Source of the DNA: Vitrella brassicaformis CCMP3155
Taxonomy: Eukaryota > Protista > Chromerida
Direction of reading: 5' to 3'
Length of the DNA stretch: 64,000 bases
Assembly: GCA_001179505.1 (NCBI GenBank)
Contig: CDMY01000677.1
Span: 236,753-300,752, forward strand
Part shown: positions 3,250 through 34,914 of the stretch, in pieces
Layout of the letters: every line of letters starts with the position of its first letter
Position numbering within the stretch: position 1 is the stretch's first letter
Position numbers and translations under genes: made by a program
The notes under the pieces: model-generated
What the model was told of the DNA's origin: nothing
Database searches by the model: none
What the model saw: only the letters and a program-made list of their open reading frames with translations

Positions 3250-5671
3250 CTACAGCTGGGACTGGTCCACCCCACTATCGTCCACACGCCTCTTCTTCGG
3301 CACCCGCTTCAACTTACGCCTCACTGCCGGCCTCTCACACGCGACCGCCCTCTCAATCCCATCTCCATCACACGACATCCCTCCCCCTCCCTCTCCCCCC
3401 GCCCCAGCCTGGCTCTCGCGAGGCCGCTTGACCAGCCGCTTGATCAGCCGCTTGTTGGCGCTGCTGCCCACCTGGCTGCCCTCCTCAACGTCGATCGGCG
3501 ATGAAGACGACATGCCCACCATGCCATTAGCATCAGCACTGACAGCAGCAGGTGCAGGTGCAGGTGCTGCTTCTGATGTTGGCTGGTTCCGGGGAGAAGG
3601 TGGAGGGGACGACGCCAGAAAGTCGCCGAAGATCTGATCGAGAATATCCCTCTCTGGCGGCTCTTCTGGTGCACCAGCTGCGGGGCCCGTAGCATCGCCG
3701 GCTGCTGCAGCTGCTGCTGGTGCTGCTGCTGGTGGGAGAGACGGTGATGGAGGGGCCTGTGGGGGTGGTGCAGGGGTGTCTTCGGGGTCATCGGATGGGA
3801 AGAAGAAGTCGTTGATGTCAAATCCTAGGACGGGCGAGGCCGGAGCGTCCGCGGCAGGTGGCTCGGGTCGCTCGGACGACCGCCTGAGCTCGAGTGCCCG
3901 CTGATCTCGCTCATAGGCGGCCTCGTGACGCCTGATCAACACACACACACACACACACACAGAGAGAGAGAGGCAGGTAGGTGTGAGAATGATTGCCCGT
4001 TGTTCAGTGCCACACCGTTTCCGGTCAGGCGCGAGGCTCTCCCACTGCTCCTGCAGGTTCCTCACCAACTCATCTACCTGCATCCATGACAACAAACAGT
4101 CGAAGAAGACGTGATAGGTCGCCACAGCAGGCATGTGCGTGTGCGTTGGTGTTTGGCTCACCTCGGCGTACGGGCATTCGCCTCGCTTGAAGACGAGCAT
4201 CTCATCCACGAAACGACTCCTGGGCGACCGCACAGCCTCCCCATTAGGAACACCCTCCTCGACCACACTGAACACACCACACAAATCGACATATGACCAA
4301 TGTTGGCAGGTGTTACCAGGTAAGTCCGCTTTCTCACCGTTTCTTCTTCTTCCTGGCGGCGGCCTTCGGTCTCAGCGGCTTTGGCCCCGCCTTGCGCTTG
4401 GCCGCCCGCCGCACCCTCTCAGGCACCACATCCACACGCCCACCACTGCTATGCCCTGCCGCCGGAGCCGCCGCCTTAGCCGAACCAGCAGCAGCGGCCG
4501 GCTGCCCTTCATCCACTGCCGCCTCCTCCCCGTCCCCATTATCGGGCCCCTGTGGTAGCTCCTGTTTGTCCAGTATCTCCTTGATGTCGGTCTCATAGAG
4601 GACGAGGACCTTCTTGGCTATCGACGGGTCGTTGTTGAGCGCCATGGCGGCCTCGTACTTGGTGGTGCTCGTCACCGCCCGCCCGTCCTTGAGGTAGCTG
4701 CCCACCACCAGGTAATCGGTGTTGCGCGTGACACTGCTCTGCACCTTGCCCCCGAGTGCCCTGACTGGCCTCTCCGCGTCCTTCCTCGTCAGCTTCTTCA
4801 GCTCGCCCGTGAAGACAAAGCTAGCTCCAGCAAAGGGGTACTCGCGTGTCGGGAGCTCGGGCTCCTTCTTGGGCTTCCTGGGACCCCTCCTTGCCTTGGC
4901 CTTGGCCTTGCCCTTGGCGCCCGCTGCTGTCCCAAAGCTCAGGGGAATGCGGCGGGGACCACTCCCGCTGGTTTTCGCCCCTGGATGTGGCTGCCTATCG
5001 TCTTGTGGTGCGGCCTGGGGCGCAAGCTGGGCAGCGAGGGGCGCGTCGTCATCCCATAGCAGCGGGTCGGTGGTCCCCCTGGCATTGTTGGCGTCAACAG
5101 CGTGGTCGCTGGATGGCGTCACCATGTCGATTGGTGGAGGGGGAGGGGCAGACGCACGGGGAGGGATGGGAGGAGGGGCAGGGGAGGGAGCGGGGCAGAC
5201 CATGCCCGCCGGGTGATGCAGACAGGCGCGGCTGATCATTCCGATGATGTGGTGGCAGATGCCGTACTCTAGAAACACGTGGCAGTCGCTGCACGCCTTG
5301 TCCACCAAAGCCAGCTCATCGCCATAGCGCAAGGCCGCACGCACTTCATGAGAACGACCGCTGCTGCTCTTGGTGGAGCTGCATCGGCTTGATAGCACCC
5401 ACTGCCTGCCGCCATCCACCTCGTTGGTCGTGTTGCGAGCAGAGAGGTTGCTGATGAGCTCCGGTTTCTTCAGTACGCCGGAGCGGACAGCCATGAGGTT
5501 GTAGAAGGTCTGTGGGACGGTCGCTGACTCATGCCGAATCGGCGAAAGGTGTCCCAGGTCCTCTAACTCCTCCTCCTCCTCACGACAAATCAAAGCCGCC
5601 ACCTCCTCCTCAGTCACAGTGGCTCTGTGATGCCAATACGGCTCCTCCAAATCAGTATTCTGCGGTTCCAT
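3250..5671 (-). CDS. SWIM-type Zn finger + BRCT + HMG-box-like protein with an acidic/Pro-rich tail
   Basis: ATG at 5671. Exon 1 contains [17 protein letters not shown] (SWIM-like) and [45 protein letters not shown] (RFC1/LigA-type BRCT). The apparent stop at 4334 lies within a CG|GTGAGA donor. Splicing continues in frame into [22 protein letters not shown]|[21 protein letters not shown]|[10 protein letters not shown] (HMG-box pattern). Confidence 0.7.
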
Positions 5672-5783
5672 CGTGAATTCATACACAATTCAAAAACTGA
5701 GGACATTAGCTCGCAAGCTCGCAACAACGGTTCAGCCGTTGGTGGGCGTCTTCTTTTGGGCGCCTTTTGCATCACGCCGAGTG

Positions 5784-7417: not shown

Positions 7418-9422
7418 CTTGATGGTACTGCTGCCAAATGGGGTCGGGATTGTCTGTCAGGCCGGGGGCGGGGGGGAGGTGCCGGTCCACTGTGTTGCGG
7501 CGACAGAAGCTGGGCGGCTTCTCGCCCTCTGGCACCACCTGACAAAGACAGATTGATGCTCACAGGTGGATTACACAGAAGTAGCTGGGACATGGCTGTT
7601 TTGTGTGTACCTGTGGTGGTCTGCTGCTGCTGCCGTCTTTGTCCTGTGTTGATGTGGCTGGCTCGTCCTCTTCAGCCGTGAGGGTGTCAAAGTCATCCTC
7701 TGCATCATCATCTGCAGCAACCGACGCACACTCATGTGCCACCATATGATGCCTGCCGAGTGAATGTGTCCCTTGCGTCCGTCGAGGGCCGCATCGAGAA
7801 GCGCTTCCACCCTACAGGCAGGCAGGCAGACAGATATCACAGCTGTGACACATCCACGTGTGTGTGACCATGGTCATGTAGGTCGCACACTCGTCGTCTG
7901 CCTCCTGAATGGCCGCGTCTCGCCGGGAATCCTCACACCCTGAACCAAACACACAGCCAGCATCCACCAGCTTGGTCGAGGCAGCTTTCTCTCCGAGGCA
8001 TCACCATGTTGGCTGGCTGTGCGCTGCAGGTCGCTGTATCGCTGACACACTCGGCCGAGCTTCCACTGGTGCACCGCTGCACGGGGGGCACCTGGTGGGG
8101 TGAGTGACACACACAAAGGTCAATGAGCTGGACACACGAGACGGGTGATTAATGACCACTGACCATCTTCCCCAATGCCTTTCTGGTAGCAAATCAGTCC
8201 GTTCGGATGAATCACAGACACATTGCCTGACAGACAGACAGACAGACAGACAGAGAGTGGGTGACGGACGTCTCAAGGTCTAATGGCGTGTTCCCTGGCC
8301 GGCCTACATGTGGTGTCGAGTTGGTGCGCCTTGTCGGGGCTGTAGAGGCGGAAGACCTTCCGCCCACGCAGCAACACATACAGATTGTCGTGCTGCACAC
8401 ACACAACTAACGAAATGCAAAGGACATGACGGTTGGCTGTGCATCTGTCTCACAAAGTCATGGTGGAGTCCACTGGTGGTGCCAGCGCGGCTCTGCCCCA
8501 TCCACACGTTGTACTGATACGGCAAGAGGTGACTGCACAAGCAGACGAACAACAGTGTGCCGCGGAGAGAACAACTGGTTGTTTCCATCCTCTCCTACCC
8601 GAACAGCTTGGGCCTCAACGGCACATCAGCGAGCAGGGCGGACGCGGGATGCCCAGTGAGCGACACAGGACCTGCTCTCAACACCCAAGACCCGGTGGAC
8701 ACAGCCATCAACAGAGTCCATCAGAGTGGTGTGTGTTGACTGACCGGTGCCTGTCTCGTCTATCGTCTGTGTGGTCAAGTAGAGATCCTCACGACCTGCA
8801 CCCAACATGCAGCCAGCACAATCAGCGGCCAAGTGGCTTCGTGGCTGCATCCAAAGTGGATCGCTTGCCTTTATCGAGCTCATCGAGGAAAGCACCGAAG
8901 GCCATCCTTACTTTGCGGCCCTCACCTGCACGGCCACAAAAGACAAAGCGATGACCGAACTCTACTCCTGCCCATCCCTCACCAAATTGGTCAAAGTCAT
9001 TCCGCCGGTGCTCGACATCGACAAACGAATCACCGGCCCTCTGTCGCAAATAGCTGTTCGTCCACCGCTGGAGACCCTTGAATTCGCCGCTCAATGAGTC
9101 AGTGAGCACCACTGGCATTCGCCACTTGACGAACTGATAGAAGAAATCACCAGCAGAGAGAGAGGCCAGGGGCACACCCTCAATGGGCCAAAACACATCA
9201 GGCGAGAACCTGAATCGACAGGCACAAAGTGCACCAACAGAGGAGCAATGGGAGGTGTGTGCTCGGGTGTGCTCGTCCAGCGGCTTCCTTCTTTGCATCG
9301 TCGAACTCACTCACTCACCCTTTGTATGTGACGACGGCGTCTTGACATCTTTTGCCTCTTTCTGCCCTGTTTGTGAAGATCTGCTCATCCCGCTGCCTTC
9401 TCGGCTTCTTGCGATGCTTCAT
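7418..9422 (-). pseudogene. JmjC (cupin-like 2OG/Fe(II) oxygenase), copy A, 3'-truncated
   Basis: MKHRKKPRRQR... and GLHHDF|HDNLYVLLRGRKVFRLYSPD (HxD motif). Homology to copy B stops abruptly at 7418, so the exon carrying YLPASWFHEV (third iron ligand) and AFNYWF is absent. Confidence 0.75.
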
Positions 9423-9520: not shown

Positions 9521-12159
9521 ATGTCGAGCAGGGAGGAGCCCAACTTGGAACGGCTTCTGCAGTCGCTGCTGCCTCGTCTGGCCGCCTTGCCCACCACTCA
9601 TGAGCGGCTGCGAGTCGTCAGCCCCCTCGACATCATTGACCACAGCATCCCTGAGTCAGCCACAACGACCCCTTTCGGCCACACGCCCCGCGTCAAGATC
9701 AGGATCTTCCGCAAAGTGCGAGCATTCGGCTTCCGGGACGTGGCTGTCGTCGGCCACTACTATGGATCTATGCCGCGGGTGGAGGACCGATTTGCGCAGC
9801 TGCTGCGGGCCGAGGAGCCGCGGATGAGCGGCTGCTGGTTCATGCTGGGAACAGGTGGGCAAAAGGGCCATAGTGAGGGTTCACATTCGTGTCATGATGA
9901 GAAGTGCTCTGTGCTTTGTCAGGCGACGATGAGGCGTTGTCACGGCTGGAGGCGTCCGGCATCCCCAATGTGATGCTCGACTACACATTCCGCAACCCCT
10001 GCACAGGCAGCAGCTCACTCGACAGCCTCAAGACCACCATCGGCCGCATCCATGAGCACTTCAAACAGCTCGACAGGGAGGTGGGCATGGCTGCCGACAA
10101 TGACGGCATGCCTCACTTGGACGACCAGGCGAGTCAGTCGGGCTACCGGGAGCTGAAGCGCGATCACCTGTACATCAACTTTGTGGATCTGCTGGACTTC
10201 AACATCACCATGGACGCGCCAGAAGTGAAGGTGGGACCTCACCGGTGACTGTGATTGCCAGAGGACGATACTCATGCATTCCATGTGGCGCTTTCCATGT
10301 GCAGAAAGTGATGGATTACCTGTCGTCTGAGAGAATACCGATTCTGAAAGGCATCTGTTTTGAGGGTGCGAGAGGCATTGCGTTTGCTGATGAGTACGGC
10401 GATGTGACTCAGCGCCTCCGGTGAGCGCCAAGACAGAGCAGTGCACTGAGCCCACTGTACTTGTTATTCTGTCTCCAGCGCCTTGTTCCCTGCGAGTGAC
10501 TTCAAGTTGCTGGTGCACTCACACGCTGGGCCGCACGGCGACAACTCACAGGCGGCGGCATTGGAGTGTGTCCGTCGGGGGGCAGACGGCGTCTGGGCAG
10601 GCTTCATCCCTCAGGCCGCACAGACGGGCCACAACTGCTCATTGCAGTATCTGGGCTACCTGCACAGCTCCGGCAACAACCAAGTCGCGCAACTCTACAA
10701 TCTAAACACGGTGAGATAACAGGGGCGGGCCATCCGGCATCCAGAACAATATTCTAAGATGCCGCGTTGTGTTGTTCTGCAGGCTGTTGAGACGGCCCGA
10801 TCGCTGCATGAGTTGAGTTTCCCCGGCGAGCCCATCCCAGCCGACTGCCCCATCTTCGGCAGCAACGCCTACTCGTGGGTCCACAGCGTCTTCAGACACG
10901 ACAGACGGACACCGAGAGGGCTGCCTGCACGAGCGGTGAGCCAGCGGCAAGCACTAGGTAGCACTAAGAGAGGACATAGACACGTGTGTTGCTCCCCGTC
11001 AACAGGTTGGTGCGACAGAGGGTGCGCGGTTTGCTGGCATGACGACCGATGTCGACATGCTCATCCAGCGACTGGACGGCCTCATTGGCAGCGATTTTTC
11101 TTCGATGCAGCCTGATGCGAAGAAGGTCTCCGCATTGGGCGTTGTGACAGCGATCCAGCTCCTGCTGAGTAAAGAACATCAGTGCAACTTCAACGACCCC
11201 GACAACCTCAGATACATCTACAGACACGTGAGAGGAGCAGTAAAGGCAGAAGCAACAGAGAGAAGACGGGAGATGACTTTCGTTGTGCTTGTAGGTCGAC
11301 AAGGTGGGTTTTGGCGTTTCTGACACGGCCTCTCTCATCAAGAGGCCACACATACGCCATCTGCGGCAGTGGCTGAGACGGCCCTCCCAAGATGCGCGTC
11401 TCCAACTGCTCTACAGGTGAGAGGAGAGGTGTGTGAACCAAGCAGTGAATACGCGAAGAGGACTGTCTCTCTTGTCTGTCAGGTCGACACGTGATGGTGA
11501 CAGCTTTGATGACCTCATGAGCAAGGTGGGGTCGGCTCGCGGTCTGCTGTTCGCCGTCAAGCACAACAACAACAAGTTCGGCGTCTTCTTCGACGGCTCC
11601 CTCAACCAACCGAGCGACCCGAAATCCGACCAGACGACCAGAGGCGACCTCTTCTTTTCGCTCAGCGGCAGCTTCCCTCAGCCCACACAGATCCACCCAT
11701 CGCAAGACAGACAGCGGGTGGATGTAGCCGGGAGGGACGGGGCTGTGCAGGGGACCGGCGGGGCATCCGGCAAGATCGTGATGGCAGATGGCTACCTCTG
11801 GCTGGCGTATTCGAGGTCGTCCACTCCGTCGCCCTCCATCCTCAGCTGCCATCACTGGATCGACAAAGACATCACACCACCAGGCTTCACCGGCGGAGAG
11901 AGCTCTGACGGTAGAAACATTCTGGCAGACACCATGGGCTTCACGGCTGACGTCATTGAAGTGTATCAGGTGGGTGCGAAATACACGCACGTGCACGTCA
12001 GCGATCATCCCTGCGGTGTGCTATGTGTGTCAGGTGGTGAGAGGCCCCTTCCCTGCCATCGATCGTGACGCCCTCCTGCCCCTGCCCGTCGACTTCCCCA
12101 AACCTCTTCCTGCGAGTGCTCTGTCGTCGCCCGAGAGGACGTGCCGCAGACCAGCCTGA
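9521..12159 (+). CDS. DRE-TIM/HMGL-like TIM-barrel domain fused to a C-terminal TLDc domain, copy A (appears intact)
   Basis: N-terminal IIDHSIPES..GHT..KIRIFRKVRAFGF, LVHSHAGPHGDNSQAAALECVRRGADGVWAGFIPQAAQTGHN (HxH...G.d.v...G.N of the LeuA/HMGL fold) and PIFGSNAY. C-terminal RLQLLYR|STRDGDSFDDLMSKVGSARGLLFAVKHNNNKFGVF...LFFSLSG...FTADVIEVYQV is a TLDc signature. The exons I checked splice in frame. Confidence 0.75.
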
Positions 12160-12861: not shown

Positions 12862-15727
12862 TCACTTCGCATGGGCTGATCGCCGCCATCGTTTCTTGCT
12901 GCGTGTCTTGGCCTTGGCTTTGCCTGACGGGTGGAAAGACACGCCTACACGTCCACATGCAGATGAAGGAGCCGTGTGTGGTGTGTGTCTCACCTTTGGC
13001 GGCTGCCTTGTGCTTTTTGGTGAGCGGGCGCTTCGAGCCAGCATGACTCGCGGCCCTCCGCGACCTTTCCGCCCACACACATGAACGGCATGGTAACGAG
13101 TTGGCATAACTTTAGCACACTCATGTGTCCTTTGCGGGGCCGGACCGAGGGAACAGACACACCAACGATATGAAATGTAGGCAACGATTGTCTGGGGCAC
13201 TCAGCACTGAGCCTGTGCCTACATCGAGACACAAACGTGTTCCGCACGTGTTCCAGTTAAAAGAGACATGGAATATAAAATGCAGGCAGCGATGCAGGCC
13301 AGCAATGCAACGGACAAACGGACGGACCATCAGTGCCTGTGTCGTCTACGGGCACCACCCCCACTCTTCTGCATGCTGCAAGCACACACACACACACAGA
13401 CAGACAGACACACAGAGCGGCATAGTGGCATGCGTGTTACCGATACGTAGGCATTTCTTCTATGTACCTGCTGATCGCCGACAGGCCTTTGAGTACCCGA
13501 ATGTGATCCATGATCACGTACCCGTAGTGCCGCGGGTCGGGCGTGCCCCCGCTGCGGTTCCGCAAGTTGTCGACTCGCTTCTTGAGGTCGTGGAAGTCCC
13601 ACCCATGGCGGCGCCGTCTCGCCTCGTCGTGGATGTGGAAGTGGCCGTCCTTGCCGCCGTCGAATGGGCCCGCATACAGGCTGACGGCGTCCTTGTGGGG
13701 GCTCGGGCGGACGATGGCGTCCAGGCCGTGGAATGCCGCCTCGCCGTAGAAGGCATCGGTGGCCGAATCGACGAGCTCCCTCTTGGCGTGGGGCATGGCT
13801 GCATCCGTCCATGAAAGGAAGACAGACAGACAGACAGACAGAAGAGACATTGCACAGAGTGAGATGCATACATTCTCTAGGGTATCGAGCATGCGTACCT
13901 GGTGGCTCGTGGATGGCTTCCAGGGCGCGCAGAGTGTCGTACTCCGCCCACTCCTTGTCCTTGTCGACGCGGTACCACTGCTCCTCCGACTTGACGACAA
14001 TCCGGTACTGCTGTGGGAGGGGCAGCTGGCCTGTGAGGTCGCGGGCCTCCTGCACCTTCTCGGCGAGCTGGGTGAGGTCCCAGCTGCACCGTGGCAGCCG
14101 CCGCGCCTCCCCCACCACGAAGTAGCCCTCCCCAAAGCCGTCGTTAAATTGGCCGAAGCCAAACTTGACGGCCTGCTCGGTGGGAGGGCTGCTGCCGACG
14201 GCCATCAGCTACAGCGGGCCGATCCACCACCCGTCCTTGCGCATCTGCAGCAGAAAGTTCTGCGCCACCGTCGTCAGCTGCTGACCCTCGGCCTCGTTGT
14301 CGGCTGGCGGCGCGGCGACTGATTGACCAAAACAAGGCGCAGCGCACACAAAGTGGCAGCAGCGGCAGCAGCAGCCTGTCTGTCTGGCTGTCTGTCTGGC
14401 TGGCTGTCTGTCTGTGTATGTCTGTGTGTGGGGTTTTGACTCTGCTGTGGCTTGTAAGATCCTCAAGCCGATCCTGCTCGTAAGGCTCATCCTCCTCAGA
14501 GTGGAACAGGTCCCTGCACACACGCAGACACGGACACACAGAGAGCGACCTCACTCCCTTTGTCAACTCTATGTGCCCATCTGACCCTCGTCCTCGTTCA
14601 ACTTCTCGTCCTCTGCTCACAAACGAGAGACACACACACGACCCAGAAACACGCGTTGATGTATGGATGTACAGTACGTGGCTTGGTTTCGTGTGTTTCC
14701 GTGTCTTGGCTTATTTATTCACCGGTCCCTTTGCATTCTCTGCTTGGTATGGCGCACCTGAAAAGGCGACAGGAAGAGAAACCAAGCTCTTGCTTGGCGG
14801 TGAGTGCAGTGCTTGGTTTCGTATCACTTACCTTATGCTGAGCGTCGTATTGGTGCTCCTCGATGCAGCGAATGAGCTCGCTCACCTGCTGATGGAAAGC
14901 TTGAGGTGAAGACAACAAATGCGATGCGCTGTCTGTTTACCTCGATGTGCACATCTTTGCTGTGGAGGGCTTCAGCATACTATCAGCCAAACACACAAAC
15001 AGACATGAGGACGAATCAAGGTCATGCATTTGGTCTCGTTGAACATCGCCTCCAAAGCTTGACGCTTCCTCTTCCTGCACACACACATATGCCACAAACA
15101 CACATACATACAATCGTCAGCCGACGGGTAACTATGTGTGTGTACCGCCATGTCTCGCACAACACCAAATTGCAGCTTGCCGCCACGAGGTTGTCCTTGA
15201 TGCGCCCGCCACATTTTGAGCTGCACACTCACCCACACGCACATACACGTGGAGAAGCTTTCTGTCTGTGTGTGATACATACAAGCGTGTGGCCCTCCTC
15301 GGCTCCAAAGCGGTACATCGCCTACATCATAAGCCAACAAATATAAAATGTAGGCAACGATTTGCCCGCTCGCCCCCGCCTCCCCTCCCGTCTTGGCCTT
15401 CTTCGCGGCCGGCTCGCCCCCTTCCTCCTCCTTCTTGTCCTCCTCCTTCTTGCCCATGTGGGCCTGGCGGATGTGCTGCAGGAACTTGTGGTAGCTGAAC
15501 TTGCCCCACCCACCCCCGCTCAGCACTCTCCGCGCAGCCTTGTTCCTCACGCCGCAGCGCGTGCACTTGTAATAGACCACCACCACGCTCTCCGGCTGCA
15601 CAACACATGAACAGCAGCAATTTTTGAACAGAAGCCAGCAGCATACAACACACAAATACACGCCTACGTCTATCTCTATGCCATTCATGATCTCGTTGGT
15701 CTTCGCCTCCCTGTCCCTCGGTGTCAT
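12862..15727 (-). pseudogene. Unknown gene X, left copy: N-terminal BED/C2H2-like Zn finger plus the family-X domain, with an in-frame nonsense codon
   Basis: Exons include YYKCTRCGVRNK...FSYHKFLQHIRQAHM (Cx2C...Hx4H), KDGWWIGPL*LMAVG (TAG at 14209-14211 where the right copy has TGG), FNDGFGEGYFVVGEARRLP and AAMPHAKRELVDSATDAFY. Basic terminal exons end KAKAKTRSKKRWRRSAHAK*. The start codon is uncertain. Confidence 0.55.
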
Positions 15728-18769: not shown

Positions 18770-21700
18770 AGCCACAATCGCGGCTGGCCGCTCGTCGAGG
18801 CAGCCATTGCCGCCTGCTTCGAGGACGGGTGGTGGATCGGCCCGCTGTGGCTGATGGCCGTCGGCAGCAGCCCTCCCACCGAGCAGGCCGTCAAGTTAGG
18901 CTTCGGCCCATTCAACGACGGCTTTGGGGAGGGCTACTTCGCGGTGGGGGAGGCGCGGCGGCTGCCACGGGGCAGCTGGGACCTCACCCAGCTCGCCGAG
19001 AAGGTGCAGGAGGCCCGCGACCTCTGCCCCTCCCACAGCAGTACCGGATTGTCGTCAAGTCGGAGGAGCAGTGGTACCGCGTCGAGAAGGACAAGGAGTG
19101 GGTGGAGTACGACCCTCTGCTGCGCCCTGGAAGCCATCCACGAGCCACCAGGTACGCATGCTCGATACCCTAGAGAATGTATGCATCTCACTCTGTGCAA
19201 TGTCTCTTCTGTCTGTCTGTCTGTCTGTCTTCCTTTCATGGACGGGTGCAGCCATGCCCCACGCCAAGAGGGAGCTCGTCGATTCGGCCACTGATGCCTT
19301 CTACGACGAGGCGGCATTCCACGGCCTGGACGCCATCGTCCGCCCGAGCCCCCACCCGGACGCCGTCAGCCTGTATGCGGGCCCATTCGACGGCGGCAAG
19401 GACGGCCACTTCCACATCCACGACGAGGCGAGACGGCGCGGCCATGGGTGGGACTTCCGCAACCTCAAGAAGCGAGTCGACAACTTGCGGAACCGCAGCC
19501 ATGCCCCATGCCAAGAGGGAGCTCGTCGATTCGGCCACTGATGCCTTCTACGACGAGGCGGCATTCCACGGCCTGGACGCCATCGTCCGCCCGAGCCCCC
19601 ACCCGGACGCCGTCAGCCTGTATGCGGGCCCATTCGACGGCGGCAAGGACGGCCACTTCCACATCCACGACGAGGCGAGACGGCGCCGCCATGGGTGGGA
19701 CTTCCACGACCTCAAGAAGCGAGTCGACAACTTGCGGAACCGCAGCGGGGGCACGCCCGACCCGCGGCACTACGGGTACGTGATCATGGATCACATTCGG
19801 GTACTCAAAGGCCTTTCCGCGATCAGCAGGTACATAGAAGAAATGCCTACATATCGGTAACACGCATGCCACTATGCCGCTCTGTGTGTCTGTGTGTCTG
19901 TGTGTTTGTGTGTGCGTGGTAGACCCCTATGATGCGCTTCGCTGAGTACTTCTTCTACGTGGATCTCGAGCGGTTCAAGGACACCTTCCCCGTCCCACAG
20001 GTACGCAACGATACGCACATACACAGCGATGTGGGCATGCACATGAGTACATTCATGAGAATGTGTGTGTGTGTCAGATGGGTGGAAGGCGTTTGTGCTG
20101 GTTACGCTCATCGAGACGGGCGAGTCGCCCCCGCTCCCCCCCCCCCGGAAGAGAGCGGTCGGTGAGCAGGAATGCTGAATGTCTCACGTTGTGTCTCTGA
20201 GCGATTCGTTTGCAGAGGAGGGAGGGTTGAGAAAATCGCTGGCTACATTTTATATCTGGCGGTCTCTTATCTTTTCGACCTCTTGCCTCACGTCTGTTCC
20301 CACGAGGTGACTTTAGCCTCCAAACAAATCACGTCGTCTCTCTTTGTCGCTGTGTCTCCCTTGCAATACAGCAAAGGAGAAGACCAAGACGACGCGGATG
20401 ACTGCAGAGACACACACATAACGAGATAGAGAAAGAGAGAGAGACTGAACTACGCTTCTTTGGTGTTACCTGCTGTGTGTCCTCTCAAAGGTCACGGTGC
20501 CCAAGCGGGGCTCGCTGCAGAAGACGGTGATGCGGCCCTGCCATCTGTTGATGCTCCAGGTGAGGCAGAACGGCTCGTCACGGAAACTGAGGCGTGAGAG
20601 TCGACTGGACTGCTTCCCAGACTTACGCTGTCTGTCTGTCTGCCTGTCTGTGTGTCTTTGTCAGTCAGCAAGATGGTGCTCTTCCTTCTCCAGCGGCTGC
20701 TGAACCTCTGGATTATGAAGATGCGTCCAGGGACCACCCTGGCAGGGCGTTGCTTGGTCGAAGTGAGCAAGAGAAGATGTGTTCGTGTGTAGGGGAGTGA
20801 TGCCTCCACGCGTCCCTCTGTCACGCAGGCCGCAATAGGGGCATGAGTGCTGATGAGCCCGTACGGGTCCGTGTTGATGCGATATGAATGCTGTCTCCTG
20901 GTGTGCCCTTCTGCAGGAACGGGAAGCGGCAAGGAGGATTGGCAGAAAGAGGAGCGGGAAGGACATAACGCAGATCACACACTCGACTCGCATCCGACTG
21001 ACTGATGGTCCTTGTTCTCATCTGTCTGTCATGGTAGAAGAGAGAGGCGGGCGATCATGCTGCGCGACATCCGTACGCCACGCCTACACACCGACACAGA
21101 CACACACACGAGTGTTGCGGGTGTGATTCATTCACGTGTGCAGAGCTGCTTCGTTGTCGTCCATCTCCGCCGAGGCGGCCGCAAAGGCGGCGGCCATGCA
21201 GGAGCCGGCAGAGGGTATGCACACACCCAACAAGTCCGTTTCTAATGAGAGCGAATTGTGAATGTGTGGATCAATTTGATCAATCTGCGGACTCTGTTGG
21301 TTAGCTCTGGTTGGGTCAGCCACACCTCGATTTCTCTTTTTGTTGCTGCAGGGGTCAGGCCTCAGCCATGTGTGTCACCCGGCCACAGAAGAGCAGAAAT
21401 GAGACCGATGCATCCAGCTGACTGATCGTCCCTGTTTTGACGTGTGTGTATGCAGGCTTCGTTCCCGCTCAGCGTCGTGTACGAGTCCGACCAGAACACG
21501 CACATCGCCACCACGCAGACGACCTACCAGGTACATGGATGCACGAGTGCATGCGGTGTCCTTCTCTTGCCATGCGCACACAATGTTCGCTCGCCCCCTC
21601 CGTGTGTGTGTGTGTGTGTGCAGACCCCGCTGCAGGTGCCGCCTGACAAGCGCTGCCCCGTCATCAATATGGTAAGGGCATCATCAGTGTGCCTCCACAC

Positions 21701-23098
21701 ACACACACACACAGACACACATATCTGTCAGCGTGTGCTGGGCTTCGTCCCATTCAACGACGGCTTTGGGGAGGGCTACTTCGTGGTGGGGGAGGCGCGG
21801 CGGCTGCCACGGGGCAGCTGGGACCTCACCCAGCTCGCCGAGAAGGTGCAGGAGGCCCGCGACCTCACAGGCCAGCTGCCACTCCCACAGCAGTACCGGA
21901 TTGTCGTCAAGTCGGAGGAGCAGTGGTACCGCGTCGAGAAGGACAAGGACTGGGCGGAGTACGACCCTCTGCGCGCCCTGGAAGCCATCCACGAGCCACC
22001 AGGTACACATGCTCGATACCCTAGAGAATGTATGCATCTCACTCTGTGCAATGTCTCTTCTGTCTGTCTGTCTGTCTGTCTCCTTTCATGGACTGGTGCA
22101 GCCATGCCCCATGCCAAGAGGGAGCTCGTCGATTCGGCCACTGATGCCTTCTACGACGAGGCGGCATTCCACGGCCTGGACGCCATCGTCCGCCCGAGCC
22201 CCCACCCGGACGCCGTCAGCCTGTATGCGGGCCCATTCGACGGCGGCAAGGACGGCCACTTCCACATCCACGACGAGGCGAGACGGCGCGGCCATGGGTG
22301 GGACTTCCGCAACCTCAAGAAGCGAGTCGACAACTGCGGGGGCAAGCCCGACCCGCACCACTACGGCTACGTGATCATGGATCACATTCGGGTACTCAAA
22401 GGCTTGTCCGCGATTAGAAGGTGCATAGAAAGAACGCCTACACATCGGCAACACCCATGCCACTATGCCGCTCTGTGTGTCTGTGTGTCTGTGTGTGTGT
22501 GTGTGTGTGGTGTGCGTGTGTGCTTGCAGCATGCAGAAGAGTGGGGGTGGTGCCCGTACACGACGCAGACACTGAGGGACACATGCACCACATGCTGCGG
22601 GGCAGGGGATGGTAGGGGATGCGATGGCAGCGAGGAAGGGCAGGATGCCTGCACGGGGCCTGCATCGCTGCCTGCATTTTATATTTCCATGTCTCTCTCA
22701 CTGGAACACCTGCGGAACACGTTTATGTCTCGATGTAGGCACAGGCTCAGTGCGGCTGAGTGCCCCAGACAATCGTTGCCTACATTTTATATCGTTAGTG
22801 TGTCTGTTCCCTCAGTCAGGCCCCGCAAAGGACACATGAGTGTGTTATAGTTATGGGAACTCGTTACCATGCCGTTCATGTGTGTGGGCGGAGAGGTCGC
22901 GGAGGGCCGCGAGTCATGCTGGCTCGAAGCGCCCGCTCACCAAAAAGCACAAGGCAGCCGCCAAAGGTGAGACACACACCACACACGGCTCCTTTATCTG
23001 CATGTGGACGTGTAGGCGTGTCTTTCCACCCGTCAGGTAAAGCCAAGGCCAAGACACGCAGCAAGAAACGATGGCGGCGATCAGCCCATGCGAAGTGA
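18770..23098 (+). pseudogene. Unknown gene X, right copy, carrying two family-X domains; the first is frameshifted
   Basis: First domain (18.8-19.9 kb) has a 10-nt deletion (ACAGGCCAGC missing at about 19024), a 1-nt insertion near 19120 and a 247-bp tandem duplication. The second domain (21.73-22.45 kb) begins at a normal acceptor (CAG|CGTGTGCTGGGCTTC). The gene ends with the same basic exons as the left copy. The 5' end is unresolved. Confidence 0.55.
19254..19747 (+). repeat. 247-bp head-to-tail tandem duplication of an exon
   Basis: ATGCCCCA(C/T)GCCAAGAGGGAG starts at 19254 and 19501. The junction sits on a GCAGC microhomology (GGGTGCAGCC / AACCGCAGC). Confidence 0.9.
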
Positions 23099-23788: not shown

Positions 23789-26393
23789 TCACGCTGGTGT
23801 GCGGCACGTCCTCTCGGGCGACGACAGAGCACTCGCAGGCAGAGGTTTGGGGAAGTCGATGGGCAGGGGCAGGAGGGCGGCAGTTGGCATGGCGGGGAGG
23901 GGGCCTCTCACCACCTGACACAACACATTACAGGAATTATCTCTCACGTGCAGGTGTGTGTGTCCATCGCACCCACCTGATACACTTCGATGACGTCAGC
24001 CGTGAAGTCAAGGCGGTCTGCGAGAATGTTGTCGCCGTCGGAAAGCACCGTGCCGGTGAATCCTGGTGGTGTGATGTCTTCGGGGATCCACTGATGGCAG
24101 CTGAGGATGGAGGGCGACGGAGTGGACGACCGAGAGAACCCCAGCCAGAGTTTGGCGCCTGCAATGAAGATCTTGCTGGAAATGGTGCCGCTGTTCGACA
24201 GCACAGCTCCGTCCCTCCCGGCCACCTCCACCCGCTGCCTGCCTTGCGGTGGGTGGATCTGTGTGGGCTGAGGGAAGCTGCCGCTCAGTGAAAAGAAGAA
24301 GAGCTCCCCTCTGGTCGTCTGTGTGGATGTCGGGTCGCTGGGTTGGTTCAGGGAGCCGTCGAAGAAGACGCCAAACTTGTTGCTGCGGTTCTTGACGGCG
24401 AACAGCAGACCGTGAGCCGACCCCACCTTGCCCATGAGGTCAGCGAAGCTGTCACCGTCACGTGTCGACCTGACGGACAAGAGAGGCAGTCCTCTTCGCG
24501 TATCCACTGCTTTATTCCCACTTGTTTCGTCTTGCCTGTAGAGCAGACGGAGCCGCGCATCTTGGAATGGTCGTCTCAGCCACCGCCGCAGATGGGGTAT
24601 GTGTGGCCTCTTGATGAGTGAGGGGCTGTCAGAAACGCCAAAACCCACCTTGTCGACCTATAAGCACAAAGCAAGTCATCACCTGTCCCTCTCTCTGTCG
24701 CTTCTGCCTTTCCTTTCCTCTCACGTGTTGGTAGATGTATCTGAGATTGTCGGGGTCGTTGAAGTTGCACTGATGGCCCTCAGTCAGCAGCAGCTGAATC
24801 GTTATCACGACGCCCAATGCGTAAGCCTTCTTCGTGTCAGGCTGCATCGAAGAAAAATCGTTGCCAATGAGGCCGTCCAGCCGCTCGACGAGCACATCGA
24901 CATCGGTCGTCATGGGAGCCAGCCGCGCACCCTCTGTCGCACCAACCTGGACGGGGAGCAACACACGTGTCTATGTCCTCTCTCAGTGCTACCTAGTGCT
25001 TGCCGCTGGCTCACCGCTCGTGGCGGCAGCCCTCTCGGTGTCCGTCTGTCGTGTCTGAAGACGCTGTGGACCCACGAGTAGGCGTTGCTGCCGAAGACGG
25101 GGCAGTCGGGCGGAATGGGCTCACCGGGGAAACTCAACTCATGCAGCGATCGGGCCGTTTGAACGGCCTGCAGAACAGGTTGCTTAGTTCAGAACTACCT
25201 TGGCTGCTTGATTACCGACCGTGTCGAGTTTGTAGATCTCTCGGACTATGCCGTTCCCGCAGCTGTGCAGCTTGCCCAGGTACTGCATGGAACAGTTGTG
25301 CCCTGTCTGTGCTGCCTGTGGGATGAAGCCTGCCCAGATGCCGTCCGCTCCCCGCCGCACACACTCCCACGCCATGGCCTGCGAGCTGTCCGAGTGAGGC
25401 GCCGCGTGTGAGTGCACCAGCAGCTTGAAGTCGCCAGACGGGAATGACAGCCTGACACAAAACGAACTCGAATGTGGTGGAGTGTCAATGGCCATCTGCG
25501 GCCGCTTCTCACCTGAGTCGCGAGGTCACTTCAGCGTAGTCGTCGATGTCAGCGTTGCCCAAGCCGCCCTCAAAACAGATGCCTTTCAGGATCGCGGTGC
25601 TCTCTGACGTCAAGGAATCGATCACTTCCTGCACTCACAAACACAATGACACCAACACGTGCATTATCCTTGAGCAAATCGCCTCACCTTCACTTGTGGA
25701 GCGTCCAGGCTCACGTCGGAGTCCAGCAGATCCACGAAATTGATGTACAGGTGATTGCGCTTCAGCCACCTGTACCCCGACGCGCTGGGCTGAGAGTCTT
25801 CGTGAGGCATGCCATCATTGTCGGCGGCCATGACCACGTCCCTGTCGAGCCTCCTGAAGTGCTCGTGGATGCGGCCGATGGTGGTCTGGAGGCTTTGAAG
25901 TGAGCTACTGCCTGTGCGGGCGCCCGCAAATGTGTAGTCGAGCATCACATTGGGGATGCCGGATGCCTCCAGCCTCGCCAGTGCCTCATCGTCGCCTGAC
26001 AAAGCACAGAACGCCGCTCATCAGTGACATGAACATGACCCTTCGGAACGGGGCCCCTCACGCACCTGTTCCCAGCATGAACCAGCAGCCGCTCATCCGC
26101 GGCTCCTCGGCCCGCAGCAGCTGCGCAAATCGGTCTTCCACCCGCGGCATAGACCCATAGTAGTGGCCGACGACAGCCACGTCGCGGAAGCCGAATGCCC
26201 GCCCTTTGCGGAAGATCCTGATCTTGACGTCTGGCGTGTGGCCGAAAGGGGTCGTTGTGGCCGACTCAGGGATGCTGTGGTCAATGATGTCAAGGGGATT
26301 GGCCTTCCTGAGCTGCTCTCTCGTTGTGCGTCGGCGAGGCCGGCGCCTTGAAGTCCGCTCCGACTCTGCGGTCTCATCGCCGCTCGAGGCCAT
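23789..26393 (-). CDS. DRE-TIM/HMGL-like + TLDc fusion, copy C (appears intact, distinct N-terminus)
   Basis: MASSGDETAESERTSRRRPRRRTTREQLRKANPLDIIDHSIPES..., LVHSHAAPHSDSSQAMAWECVRRGADGIWAGFIPQAAQTGHN, and TLDc RLRLLYR|STRDGDSFADLMGKVG. The exons I checked splice in frame. Confidence 0.72.
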
Positions 26394-26535: not shown

Positions 26536-29500
26536 ATGGCTTTCTTGCGATGCCTGTCGTCGCTGCCCTTCCCGCCCTTCCCACGACCAAGGAGGCCTCT
26601 CTCCCTCTGTGCGCTCTCCAGCCGTCATCAGTCGAGAGCCCAGTCATCATCCAGCAAGACGAGCAGCAACAACAGCAACACCATGACTGTGGACCGGCTG
26701 CCCATCGACAGTTCGCTCAAGCAGGCCCTGGCATCGCTGAAGATCACCTCTCTATTCGACATCCAGCGGGACGTCTTCCACCCCATTCTGCAAGGGATGA
26801 ACGTCGTCGGCCGCTCGCGCACCGGCACGGGCAAGACGCTGGCCTACCTAGTGCCTGTGCTGCAGCGCATGAAGATGGAGAAGCTCCATGCCAGCGATGC
26901 GGCCGTGCTGATTCTGCTGCCGACACGAGAGCTGGCCAAACAGGTGTGCTGCAGGAATGTCGCATACGTGGCGATCTGTAAGTGTGGGGCGTGTATGTGT
27001 GTGCAGGTTGGGATGGTGCTGTTGGGTCTGAGCAGCTCGTTCCTTCACTTGAACATCGCCCTGCTGTATGGCGGTGCGCCGGTGGCTCCCCAGGCACAGC
27101 TGCTGAAGCTGCAGCCCAACGTCGTCATCGGCACGCCGGGGAGGTGCCAGCTGATGGTGAGTGACCGAACGAGGCCTTACGTAGCCGACGGTCGGGTGTG
27201 TGTTCTCCTCGTCAGGTGGATAAGGGTCTCTTGTCGCTGTCGTCGACTAAGGTAGTCATCATCGACGAGGCAGATGCTCTCATGGCCCATGGATTCGCTG
27301 CACAAGTCCAGACGTGAGCATGACACCAAACCTCACCCTCTTTCACATTTCTGAGGTTCCCCTCTGTTCCTGCAGCCTGCTGCAAGGCGTCGGGCAGAAC
27401 AACGCCAAGTTCCAGAGCCTTCTCTTCACGGCCTCCTTCACCCCCGAGCTGAGGGCCCTCATCGACAAACACTTTGACACACCCACGTCGGCAGCAGAGA
27501 CAGGCACCAACACAGGGGGCGATGGCAAGTGCCGCACAGTGGTGATTGACACAGTGGAGGGCACACGTGTGGGGGTGGACGACAAGGGCAAGGCCAGCGA
27601 GACCGTCACTGGTGAGAAAAAACATGCGGGGAGACAAAGCGCCCATTGACAGATATGTGGATTGCCGACAACTTCTCTGTTGTTTGTTCAGTGCCGACGA
27701 CGGTTCAGCAGGTCCGTCATTACGTGCTCAAGGTCCCCACTCTGGCGTCGCCCCACTCCCCCACCCCGACGGACCCCTCTTCTCCTTTAGACCTCACAGC
27801 CACCTCCACACTGACGTCCCACCGGAACGTCGAGAGGCGGCTGCGTGTGCTCATCCAGCTTCTTACCGACAAGCTGCGGCTGAAGCCTTACCGCGGGAGT
27901 CTTGCCAAGGATGGTTCTCGGGGGAGGGGGAAGGCGATAGTGTTTGCGGGCATGAAGGAGGTGGAGATGGTTGTGCGCCATCCTGCCTTGGAGGGGCACG
28001 CGAGAGCCCTGCACTCGAAGCTCGATCAGACACAGAGGTACGCAGTGGAGGGGAAAGGGCCGTGGAGCAGAAGAGCATTACCCCTGTGTGAGTGTTGCAG
28101 AGATTTCATTCTCAATGGGTTTGCCGAGAACAAGGTGAGTCCGTCACGCACAGCGGACAGACAGTATGTGAGTGTGCGCGTGTGTGTGTCGGTCAGTATC
28201 GAGTGTTGGTGTGCACCGACTTGGTTGCCCGCGGGCTGGACTACCCCGACGTCACACACGTGGTGCACTTCAGACCGCCCGCAGAACCCAACAACTACAT
28301 ACACAGGCAAGGCAGACACACACACACATGAACGATGCATGAGACGAACGAATCAATGTGTGTTGGCATCACATGCAGAGCTGGCCGCACTGGTCGTGCC
28401 GGCAAGGGTGGCGAGAGCATCATGATGTATTCCAGTGACGAGTACCCCCTCGTCAAGGCCATCCACACCCTCACACGACAGCAGTTCACACCCCTCCCCA
28501 CACCCGACCCCAAAGACCTGGAAAGGACCCACACACAACAGCTCATGAGTGAGTGCCCGCACAACAGACAGGCAGCCACACCCAGTCTCTCCATTTGTGT
28601 GTCTGCCAGATGCGCTGCACGACATCATATCGTCCACTGACGACGGCACACTCAACGACAGCGAGCTCGACTACCGCCCATACCTGCCAGCAGCCGAGCG
28701 GCTCATCAAGACACACGGTGCCGCGCCACTTGCAAACGCCCTCGCACTGCTGGACGGAGGGTGGGCACACACACACACAGACGCAGTGGACTCTGCCGTG
28801 CCATTTGTGTTGGCTGGGTCGTGTGTGTGGTGTGCAGGAGTGTGCCTTTGGCATCCGGACTACCGGCTCCCCTGCGTGTGTCCCCGCTGTCCGGTCGTCG
28901 GGGCTTCATGCCACTCGCACTCATCGACACCAACCACACTGTGAGTGAGTGCAGCCGTTCCATGACGGCCACGAATGCCGGCGTGTGTGTGCGTGCAGGT
29001 GTTGACGAATGCCGACAGGGTCCGTGCGGTGCTGCAGGAGCGGATGCCGGTGCTCAAGCAGAAGAAGGCTGCACTCGGACGCATCGTCAAGACAGCAAAC
29101 GGATACGTCTTCGACGTGAAGGTGGGGAATTGCCTGCCGCCGCGGATGTGCCGATCTATGTGCTCGTGTCCGTGTGTCAGTATGTGTACGGCGCCAAGCT
29201 GCTGCACGACAGCGAGGAGCGAGCTGCCCTGGAGCAGCTGGGCGTACAGCTCACACACGTCAGCCAGGTACAGGGAAACGACACACGCGCTCACTCACCC
29301 AGCCACACACATCGACGTGCAACATGCACCTCCGCTACTCTCTTAGCTGCCGCGTCTGCTGGTCGATGAGTCTGAGAAGGCCAAGATGCGCAAAAACAAA
29401 AAGCTGCCGTGGAGACGGTAAGCGAGTCCGCCGACTGTTACATCCCAGCCACACGTCTGTGTGTGGCTGTGTCTGTAGGAGGAAGGGCGACCGGCAACAT

Positions 29501-32713: not shown

Positions 32714-34914
32714 ATGAGGCTACCTGAATACTGGCAACTCAAGGTACAACAATCGCAGACACACATCGCATCTATCGCCTCCCTTCCGATGACCTTCAAG
32801 ATGACCTTTCTCCCCTCCTGTCTGTCTGTCTGTCTGTCTTTGCTTTCTCTGCTCTCTGTCTTCGCTTTCAGTGGTTGTACTTCAACGCGTTTCTTCACAA
32901 GTAAGTAAAGCACGAGAGAAACGTGGGGATCCATTCACTTCACAAACACTTGGCTCCGTGTGTGTCCAATGGCCATCGTGTCTGTCTGCAGTGCCGGGAC
33001 TGGCCGCTTCATCACTCTCTGGTACAAGAACGGATGCGGCTTCACAATCGCCCAAGTCGGCACCATCCTTGCCACCGCCCGAACAGGAGATCTCTTCTTC
33101 ACGCCTTTTTGGTCGGGACTCGCGGACAAGACGCAGCAGGGGCGGCTCATCCTGCTGTCCCTGCAACTGGCACACATGCTCATCTTCCTCTCCCTGCCCC
33201 TCTCCGTCTACCTCACCTCAGCCGACCACCAGTGGCTGCCTTTCATGCAGCCCAACAACCGGTTTCTCATCTTGTGGGTGACGGTAGCCGTCTGGTCTGC
33301 CTTTCGTGGACCGTGCAACCCTCTGCGTGACGCGTTAGCTTTGGCTGCATTGGGGAAAGAGAAGGCTAAATGGGGCCAGCAGCGGCTTTATGGAGCGGTC
33401 AGCTGGGGAATCGCACACGCGATTCTCGGGCTGTCGATGGACTATGGGGGGTTTGCCGTTTTGTTCATTCTCTTCACTCTCTCTGGTGCGTGGAGGAAAG
33501 AGGCCGTCAACCAATTGTGTGTATGTGTGTGTGTGTCCGTTATCTCTCTCGTGTGTGCAGGTGTGATGCTGTCGTTCACGCAAGTCGCGTGTCTGCCCGC
33601 GAGTACGAGCGAATCACGGCAGGCTGTGGATCTGCTGGCGGGGCTCAAGCAGCTGGTGGTGCAGCCGCACGTCGGCATCTTCTTCCTCAACCTCTTGACG
33701 ATCGGCGCATGCTTTAGTCTAGTCGAGAGCCTGCTGTTCCTGCGGATGGACGAGCTGCACGCATCCAATTTCCTCTGCGGCCTTTCGGTAAGGCCTAAGC
33801 AGCAGATGGGTGGGACCTGCCTACGTGGAGACCTATCTCTCCCTCTCCCTCTGTGTGTGTGTGTGCGTGTGTGTGAAGGTGGTTGTGACGGTGGTGTTTG
33901 AGCTGCCGATCATGTATTGGTCTGAGGTCTTCATCCGTCGGCTCGGTGTGGCGGGCATGGTCATCGTCGGACAGGCCGCATGGATCGTCAGGGCTATCGG
34001 GGTAAGCCAGATATATGCTACACCACCACACACAAGCAAATTTATGGCTTGCTGCTCGTTTGTATGCCTTTTGCGTCTTTTTCCTTCAGTACACGATGGT
34101 ACCATCAGCCTGGTCAGTAGACACGGAACGAGCCGCTGAACCAGAAAGCTCAGCTGCGTGGTGTGCGGTTGCCTGTGTGCAGGTGGTACCTGTTGCTGGA
34201 ACCTCTCCACGGCATCACCTACGGCCTCGTCTGGTGCGCGGGCGTCCACTACTGCTCGCTGCCAGAGATATGGCCTGAAGGGCTGGAGGCCACCGCACAG
34301 GTAATGCTGATTGATGTGACTGGCTGAGTGTGGTACGTGTGTGCGCGTTGTGTATATGTGCAGGGTCTGCTGACGTTGGCTCACTTCGGTTTGGGTCCTG
34401 TGTTGGGGACGAGTTTGGGTGGGCTGGTGATGGACAAGTGGGGCGCTGACACCATGTACAGGTAGGTATCTCCCACACTCACACGCCCATCCACACCCTA
34501 GCTATCGCCATCGAACCATGTGCGTGTGTTGTTCCATTTGCCAGGGGTGCGGCCATAGTGTGTCTGATGTCGCTGCTGCTCTACACCTTCTCAGCCCTTG
34601 TCAACGGCGACCTCTACTCGCCCTTCCACCGCTACGCCGTCATCAAGAAGGGCGCCAGCGACTTCCACCTCACAGACACTAGAAGGAAAGGGGAGGCCGC
34701 CGTCACCCCACTGCCCCTCAAACACACGAGACATACCGACAGGTCGCCGCTGTCGTCTGTGGGCTCATCGACGTGTGACCACACGCCGAGCGAGGGCAAA
34801 GGGCTGTCGCCCGTCAGCTCAATGCCGGAGGTGCTGGGCAAGCAAGAGGTGGCGGGAGAGAGGGATTGGGAGGGAGAGCAGCTGATTGTCGGCGGCTGTG
34901 AGGACAGTTGCTGA
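32714..34914 (+). CDS. Major facilitator superfamily transporter (MFSD6/MFS_1-like)
   Basis: MRLPEYWQLK|WLYFNAFLH..., PFWSGLADKT (MFS loop motif), WGQQRLYGAVSWG, LLEPLHGITYGLVW and multiple hydrophobic helices. Confidence 0.85.

Follow-up and report, generated by a model that had tools for sequence, protein, structure and literature searches.

What becomes of an enzyme barrel that loses the arginine at the heart of its catalytic signature, keeps nearly all of its other conserved residues and gains an interaction domain at its C-terminus? This question is raised by a small group of genes in the terminal 64 kb of contig CDMY01000677.1 from Vitrella brassicaformis CCMP3155 (GCA_001179505.1), a stretch of eukaryotic DNA with a GC content of 56-63% that we refer to as the window. 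The initial annotation had described three paralogs here (9521-12159, 23789-26393 and 59737-62372; copies A, B and C), each joining a DRE-TIM barrel of HMGL/LeuA type to a C-terminal TLDc domain and each with Pro in place of the catalytic Arg. All three were located at these positions, and their spliced models all read IIDHSIPES, with CCT as the Pro codon in each, as well as VHSH, E-C-V-x-x-GADG-x-WA...TGHN and CPIFGSNAY. In the following we argue for a ligand- or metal-binding barrel without its ancestral chemistry that is tethered to a TLDc interaction module, and we would give this reading as a whole a probability of about 0.5.

The exons of copy A were joined at canonical GT-AG sites and the resulting exon map was carried onto copies B and C via DNA alignment (Table 1), which gave a clean 699-aa open reading frame (ORF) for copies A and B. 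Letter for letter, the spliced copy A protein is CEM29675.1 (UniProt A0A0G4GIL3), labelled just "TLDc domain-containing protein" in UniProt and "unnamed protein product" in NCBI. In copy C the frame is shifted by a 7-nt deletion in exon 3, directly after 60580, and broken off within the TLDc region by an in-frame TAG (61831-61833). The public model for this copy, CEM29705.1 (P0002, 512 aa, truncated), omits most of exon 3 and stops at this TAG. The three loci thus exist as described, but only A and B are intact. As one JGI contig was split by a prokaryote-style gene caller into P0001 (barrel) and P0167 (TLDc), it could be argued that barrel and TLDc are two neighbouring genes that were wrongly merged in the annotation. 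However, in copies A and B a single frame runs without a break through introns 6 and 7, which are canonical, the MMETSP transcript ORFs P0004, P0171 and P0172 (598-600 aa) cross the barrel/TLDc junction, and P0174, a 701-aa ORF spanning both domains, lies on a JGI contig of only 2649 bp, which can only be an intronless cDNA. The transcript-derived proteins also bear out the inferred splice junctions, including the one across the GC-AG intron of copy B, as a B-type C-terminal half with this junction is present in P0174. Two separate transcripts, named by the initial annotation as an outcome that would speak against it, were not what we found: the fusion is transcribed as a single mRNA, and an annotation artefact is essentially refuted. 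All four transcript ORFs (P0004, P0171, P0172 and P0174) are mosaics put together from segments that resemble copy A, copy B and P0003, suggesting further paralogs, gene conversion or chimeric assembly; whatever the origin of these mosaics, the single mRNA stands.

We then come to the identity of the N-terminal half. A direct Pfam scan of the Vitrella N-terminal domain gave no HMGL-like match at E values up to 10, and NCBIfam has no dedicated family for it and returned nothing direct in this domain. A word-indexed search found 5 proteins, as if the domain were an orphan, and this was overturned by an exhaustive HMMER profile search that recovered 251 representative clusters at E <= 1e-3, 42 of which reached E <= 1e-30 (in the representative search and contig look-up the database paralogs P0001 and P0003 stood in for spliced copies A and B). 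Pfam HMGL-like (PF00682) was matched by 33 of the 80 relatives scanned (13/32 and 20/48), with P0035 and P0037 scoring above its gathering cut-off, and the NCBIfam matches in relatives, all far below threshold, were to homocitrate, citramalate and isopropylmalate synthases and related enzymes. Searching PDB with a 58-sequence family profile, we obtained Thermus thermophilus homocitrate synthase at E = 3.4e-12, Leptospira citramalate synthase at 9.4e-7, isopropylmalate synthase at 9e-6 and, more weakly, oxaloacetate decarboxylase, 4-hydroxy-2-oxovalerate aldolase and pyruvate carboxylase. A likeness to CcpA/LacI seen in a PDB profile search with a 4-sequence alignment (E ~0.4) was discarded as chance level. 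An AlphaFold model made with the 4-sequence alignment was unusable (pLDDT 48); with the 58-sequence alignment, residues 1-400 of P0001, which shares 93% identity with copy A in the exons that align, were modelled with a pLDDT of 90.7 and a pTM of 0.88 as eight strands alternating with helices. When this model was compared with PDB using Foldseek, all 50 matches listed were DRE-TIM enzymes (best E 2.9e-14, TM up to 0.80). Transitive profile homology and the confident model together support the prediction that the N-terminal region is a DRE-TIM barrel, as the initial annotation had expected such a model to show; its Pfam check held directly for the TLDc domain (see below), HMGL-like being reached only through relatives.

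A closer comparison shows where this barrel belongs. The same barrel and helical subdomain occur in the Claisen-condensation enzymes homocitrate synthase (2ztj, 3a9i, 3ivs), citramalate synthase (3ble, 3bli) and IPMS/methylthioalkylmalate synthase (4ov4, 1sr9, 6e1j), the post-barrel helical subdomain of copy A being homologous to the corresponding region of homocitrate synthase. Their strand-1 D-x-[ST]-x-[R]-E, strand-7 H-x-H and strand-8 G...G-[HN]-N motifs align with the Vitrella barrel, at an identity of 12-18% in structural alignments. Unlike these enzymes, the Vitrella fusion has no LeuA-dimer regulatory domain and carries TLDc there instead. Furthermore, the substrate-binding Thr in the strand-6 D-T of the Claisen enzymes (Thr257 in MAMS and Thr166 in homocitrate synthase of T. 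thermophilus) aligns with Ala236 of Vitrella (G235-A236-R237-G238); D165-T166-V-G of homocitrate synthase pairs with d-p-r-G in the family, and this position is non-Thr throughout the subgroup. The post-barrel H-x-x-G-x-H segment (with the general base His388 in MAMS) aligns as well, whereas the family consensus lacks the His, and His364 of Vitrella stands two positions out of register. Because both the Arg and the strand-6 Thr hallmarks are missing, the protein is to be filed under a separate, unnamed DRE-TIM subgroup from bacteria and myzozoan protists: it is an Arg-less member of this subgroup and not an HMGL or LeuA orthologue, so that of the proposed HMGL/LeuA-like barrel the fold was retained and the family assignment was not.

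In characterised DRE-TIM enzymes the strand-1 arginine polarises the carbonyl of the substrate, keeps it in place and stabilises the enolate. The family motif l-D-n-S-l-R-E pairs with I-D-S-T-L-R-E of T. thermophilus homocitrate synthase (R12, E13), and E45, H266 and H268 of copy A, all invariant in the family, align with E13, H195 and H197 of that enzyme, which we take to be its metal ligands, R12 presumably being the residue that binds 2-oxoglutarate. The metal motif claimed for the Vitrella proteins is therefore kept in the alignment as far as the predicted ligands Glu and H-x-H are concerned, and the Pro falls on R12 in all three paralogs, just as had been proposed. Elsewhere the Arg is found in 104 of the 104 readable [LIV]D-x-[ST]-x-R-E motifs among 148 new representatives and in all 55 aligned non-fused relatives, and Pro occurs only in TLDc-fused proteins of Vitrella, namely the three window copies, P0003 and the transcripts. 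A sequencing error at the Pro codon was dismissed, as the same CCT stands at three loci and Pro recurs in independent transcripts and in a gene on another contig. In MAMS the metal is bound by Asp90, His288 and His290 and Arg89 touches the substrate carbonyl; R89A, R89K and R89Q are all inactive, and every DRE-TIM subgroup is described as having this Arg without variation and as depending on it (PMC11532901). Since the Arg is needed for catalysis in the characterised DRE-TIM enzymes, the Vitrella barrel has most likely lost its ancestral C-C bond chemistry. A laboratory counterpart exists in human HMG-CoA lyase R41M (PDB 3mp4, 3mp5), in which the same invariant Arg was removed by engineering from the same fold. 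According to its entry title 3mp5 was crystallised with HMG-CoA bound, which means that an Arg-less barrel folds and can hold substrate; with the Arg removed, catalysis is lost but binding need not be. In contrast to this lab mutant of the lyase subgroup, the change in Vitrella is natural, leads to Pro, is fixed in a clade of paralogs and comes with a fused domain. From the retained residues we lean towards a barrel that still binds a metal or a ligand.

For a wider view of the active site we defined as conserved those columns of the 58-sequence alignment that reach >=70% among the 55 non-fused relatives, which resulted in 44 columns. The fused clade retains 40 of them, including D40, E45, N127, N197, D200, E234, G238, R253, H266, H268, G287, G290, W292, G303, H304, N319 and G356, and departs at four, which are R44P (100% Arg elsewhere), G272H, N313Y/K and R316S. 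With 40 of 44 columns kept, the loss of the Arg is, as judged from this alignment, a surgical change rather than one symptom of wider decay. Position 272, four residues past the H-x-H, is Gly in 80% of the relatives and His in all TLDc-fused paralogs, making His272 a candidate for a compensating or new active-site residue. This leads to another possible explanation, in which the protein is a neofunctionalised, active enzyme catalysing a different reaction: Pro would reshape the strand-1 loop, His272 or another residue would take over polarisation or acid-base catalysis, and TLDc would localise or regulate the enzyme. Such an enzyme would agree with the retention of all metal ligands together with the 40 conserved columns, with the clade-wide consistency of three of the four differing columns (P44, H272 and S316, the fourth varying between Y and K), with the constraint on the barrel described below and with the long stem of the fused clade, which fits a burst of adaptive change. 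Nevertheless, in none of the DRE-TIM subgroups tested did activity survive replacement of the Arg (PMC11532901), Pro offers no functional side chain, and the placement of His272 in the active site is a candidate based on sequence, so that we regard an active enzyme as rather unlikely.

Ratios of non-synonymous to synonymous substitution rates (dN/dS) were determined by the Nei-Gojobori method for copy A versus copy B. They amount to 0.41 for the whole gene (dS 0.34), 0.30 for the barrel (dS 0.40), 0.39 for the post-barrel subdomain (dS 0.26), 0.55 for TLDc (dS 0.25) and about 1 for the 35-aa tail (dS 0.11). By this measure the Arg-less barrel is still under purifying selection, and its value of ~0.3 indicates a real constraint that speaks against simple decay. 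Individual copies do die, as seen for copy C, and one may therefore ask if the family became functionless after the loss of the Arg and is drifting towards pseudogenes, with duplications and transcripts as neutral by-products. The frameshift and premature stop of copy C would fit this, as would another annotated relative, P0173 (CEM39106.1), that is a 222-aa fragment, and the higher ratios in TLDc and especially in the tail. Yet copies A and B and P0003 hold open frames of 679-699 aa over 8 introns despite a dS of ~0.34-0.40, the low ratio of the barrel goes along with its 40 preserved columns, and several transcript isoforms have been assembled, all of which makes decay of the family quite improbable.

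The C-terminal TLDc domain claimed by the initial annotation is supported by Pfam: with a gathering cut-off of 24.5 bits for TLD (PF07534), copy A reaches 28.7, P0003 41 and P0004 43.1 bits, the match of P0004 spanning profile positions 2-168 of 170. A homology search with the TLDc half returned Vitrella sequences only. Against PDB, a profile of the Vitrella TLDc ranks NCOA7 first and places the Skywalker TLDc in the top seven, at a sub-significant E of only ~1. The domain and its C-terminal position are shared with OXR1, NCOA7, TBC1D24, TLDC1/mEAK-7, TLDC2 and Oxr1p/Rtc5p, but the Vitrella TLDc is highly divergent and has insertions, and its N-terminal partner is a DRE-TIM barrel, whereas LysM, TBC or a myristoylated/EF-hand-like region are found in the known TLDc proteins. 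In Ncoa7 the TLDc domain is both needed and sufficient for V-ATPase binding, for which G815, S817, G845 and G896 are required, and V-ATPase docking is reported for every TLDc protein tested so far, five mammalian ones and yeast Oxr1p/Rtc5p (PMC8608904). The alignment to NCOA7, which is weak (E = 0.77), pairs H-G-T-S with D-G-D-S of Vitrella and F-G with F-G, which we counted as G815, S817 and G845; the G896 region lies outside it. By analogy, and in line with the V-ATPase coupling suggested by the initial annotation, V-ATPase may tentatively be named as a partner of the Vitrella TLDc, although we would not expect this to be the more probable case. Decidedly speculative is the more specific idea that the Arg-less barrel could be a dead-enzyme receptor, whose metal site would still bind the ligand of the subgroup, of 2-oxo-acid or acyl-CoA type, and which would switch V-ATPase assembly or activity via TLDc.

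How such a protein could have arisen can be seen from its relatives. The named ones come from dinoflagellates (Symbiodinium, Durusdinium, Zooxanthella, Gymnodinium), Chromera velia and Vitrella and are all "unnamed" or "uncharacterized", and the remaining branches of the subgroup are bacterial. In a neighbour-joining tree the fused Vitrella proteins form one tight clade with a long stem, sister to P0006 (CEM31294.1, Vitrella, 882 aa), which lacks TLDc and still has the Arg; the sister group of these two is made up of the dinoflagellate proteins, P0005 and P0010. From this placement we conclude that a gene was duplicated in the chromerid lineage before TLDc was fused to it and before its Arg gave way to Pro. 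P0006, Symbiodinium CAE7342052.1, Durusdinium CAK9023796.1 and the Zooxanthella protein are 27-40% identical to the fused barrel and have the signature DHS/DQS-x-x-E-P-A-T-x-T-P-F-G-H-T in common with it, but they keep the Arg and their extensions are TPR, a coiled N-terminal or an unknown C-terminal region, never TLDc. No TLDc was detected by Pfam scans of 80 relatives, mostly multi-domain proteins, nor with a local HMM; EF-hands, cNMP-binding, ankyrin, TPR, WD40, lectin-like, PAS-GGDEF or OvoA-like modules are present instead. Both the fusion and the Arg-to-Pro change were thus found only in Vitrella among the relatives scanned. In the relative from Chromera velia, P0021, the strand-1 region is absent and the Arg/Pro state is unreadable.

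Some further observations on these relatives may be added. Within the subgroup of at least 251 clusters, fusions involve PAS-GGDEF (P0044), jacalin (P0032), Laminin_G_3/PA14 (P0045, P0054) and, in P0065, an OvoA-like module of DinB, FGE-sulfatase and methyltransferase, while protist members carry EF-hand, cNMP-binding, ankyrin, TPR and WD40 domains. P0005, one of the five proteins from the word-indexed search, reads DHSIREP where Vitrella has DHSIPES; it has 634 aa with the Arg kept and a signal-peptide-like N-terminus and is encoded at 10001-11905 of locus L001, from the 166-kb ENA metagenome contig k141_5821049, which is gene-dense, intron-free and bacterial-looking, with LRR proteins and TldD/PmbA as neighbours. 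Its position nested in the dinoflagellate/chromerid clade suggests that the gene may have been exchanged between a protist and a bacterium associated with it.

Taken together, we propose a Vitrella-specific, recently duplicated family of two-domain, apparently cytosolic proteins, whose N-terminal ~440 residues form a DRE-TIM barrel plus helical subdomain belonging to a subgroup of bacteria, dinoflagellates and chromerids, with homocitrate, citramalate and 2-isopropylmalate synthases as the closest relatives of solved structure. As a first step, a P0006-like Vitrella gene with the Arg and without TLDc would have been duplicated. On the next branch the C-terminal TLDc would have been gained and the Arg changed to Pro (CGN to CCT), with the metal-ligand Glu, the H-x-H and nearly all conserved positions being kept. 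The barrel would still fold and bind a divalent metal and probably a ligand, acting as a binding module tethered to TLDc. Several points weigh against this proposal. The DRE-TIM subgroup is known from sequences alone. The acquired His272 could compensate for the Arg or form a new active site, favouring the active enzyme discussed above. The barrel model was made on P0001 and not on copy A, and TLDc is very divergent, having no close relatives beyond Vitrella and only sub-significant matches to solved TLDc structures. The dN/dS values come from one pair of paralogs, and the mosaic transcripts hint at gene conversion; the ratio for TLDc exceeds that for the barrel, and the broken copy C, one of three in the window, points to turnover in the family. 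As to novelty, the initial annotation knew of no described fusion of this kind. Indeed none was seen in the relatives scanned, and in the literature searched we found no paper linking TLDc with HMGL or with Vitrella, but the genes are already deposited as uncharacterised TLDc proteins, so that it is the barrel identity, the loss of the Arg and the architecture that appear to be undescribed.

The features of the window are collected in Table 1. Copies A, B and C are 81-84% identical at the DNA level across the whole gene including introns and sit inside larger segmental duplications, both direct and inverted. The leader of copy B (first ~35 aa) is unrelated to that of copy A. The breakpoint of the copy B duplication lies inside exon 1, where A 9623 pairs with B 26297, resulting in a new 5' end for copy B, which stands head-to-head with an ORF matching DEAD-box helicases in place of a Cupin_8 gene. 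Cupin_8 (JmjC-like) genes are divergent and head-to-head with copies A and C and end ~83 bp upstream of their start codons (at the annotated copy C locus the coding sequence starts are ~83 bp apart); this flank is 92% identical between the copy A and C loci, versus 83% for the TLDc-fusion gene. Between copies A and B a sequence of ~0.4-0.9 kb occurs several times in both orientations with an identity of 92-98%; its ORFs have no Pfam match, and it could be a repeat or a multi-copy gene. Among the other long window ORFs Pfam scans found nothing beyond BRCT, MFS_1_like and DEAD, and the BRCT and MFS_1_like ORFs appear unconnected to the fusion genes.

Table 1: Features of the fusion genes and their surroundings in the window (coordinates of the 64 kb stretch; aa numbering of copy A).
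Feature	Position	Strand	Remarks
Copy A gene, 699 aa	9521-12159	+	9 exons, 8 GT-AG introns of 58-74 nt, clean ORF
Copy A exons	9521-9854, 9923-10230, 10305-10420, 10479-10710, 10783-10935, 11006-11227, 11295-11416, 11483-11969, 12034-12159	+	
Copy A predicted DRE-TIM (beta/alpha)8 barrel with N-terminal helix, aa ~22-395	9584-11047	+	coding parts of exons 1-6; AlphaFold, Foldseek, family profile
Copy A helical subdomain after barrel, aa ~396-458	11048-11303	+	profile alignment extends through relatives and 2ztj/3a9i
Copy A TLDc, aa ~470-665	11337-12054	+	exons 7-9; Pfam PF07534, E = 1.5e-6, 28.7 bits
Copy A conserved Pro-rich 35-aa tail after TLDc	to stop at 12157-12159	+	
Copy A motif D40-H-S-I-P44-E45	9638-9655	+	CCT at 9650-9652 in place of invariant Arg; E45 at 9653-9655
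Copy A H266-S-H268, then A-G-P-H272	10516-10536	+	predicted metal-ligand H-x-H, end of strand 7; position 272 at 10534-10536
Copy B gene, intact 699-aa ORF	26393-23789	-	9 exons, one GC-AG intron
Copy B exons	26393-26066, 25995-25688, 25628-25513, 25451-25220, 25167-25015, 24946-24725, 24657-24536, 24469-23977, 23914-23789	-	
Copy C, degenerate paralog	59737-62372	+	exon structure as copy A
Pro codon CCT, copy A	9650-9652	+	
Pro codon CCT, copy B	26270-26268	-	
Pro codon CCT, copy C	59863-59865	+	
Cupin_8 (JmjC-like) gene next to copy A	7418-9264	-	
Cupin_8 (JmjC-like) gene next to copy C	57691-59539	-	
DEAD-box helicase-matching ORF next to copy B	26536-27255	+	
Repeat between copies A and B	13330-14237, 18822-19920, 21741-22575		both orientations
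BRCT	4334-5686	-	E = 2.8e-9
MFS_1_like transporter	32960-33901	+	E = 1.1e-27

TLDc proteins are emerging as V-ATPase regulators, and the fusion of TLDc to an enzyme fold that binds a metabolite would give a concrete hypothesis for a signal to which they respond. If the dead-enzyme receptor were true, it would be a direct sensor from metabolite to organelle acidification, built from an enzyme fold, and among TLDc proteins the first for which a small-molecule input can be named; so far the fusion is confined to one species and known here from sequence alone. Furthermore, the analysis has brought to light an unnamed DRE-TIM subgroup of considerable size (at least 251 clusters from bacteria, dinoflagellates and chromerids), which Pfam and NCBIfam largely miss, and within it the clade with a fixed and selectively maintained Arg-to-Pro change represents a natural experiment in pseudoenzyme evolution or active-site re-invention.

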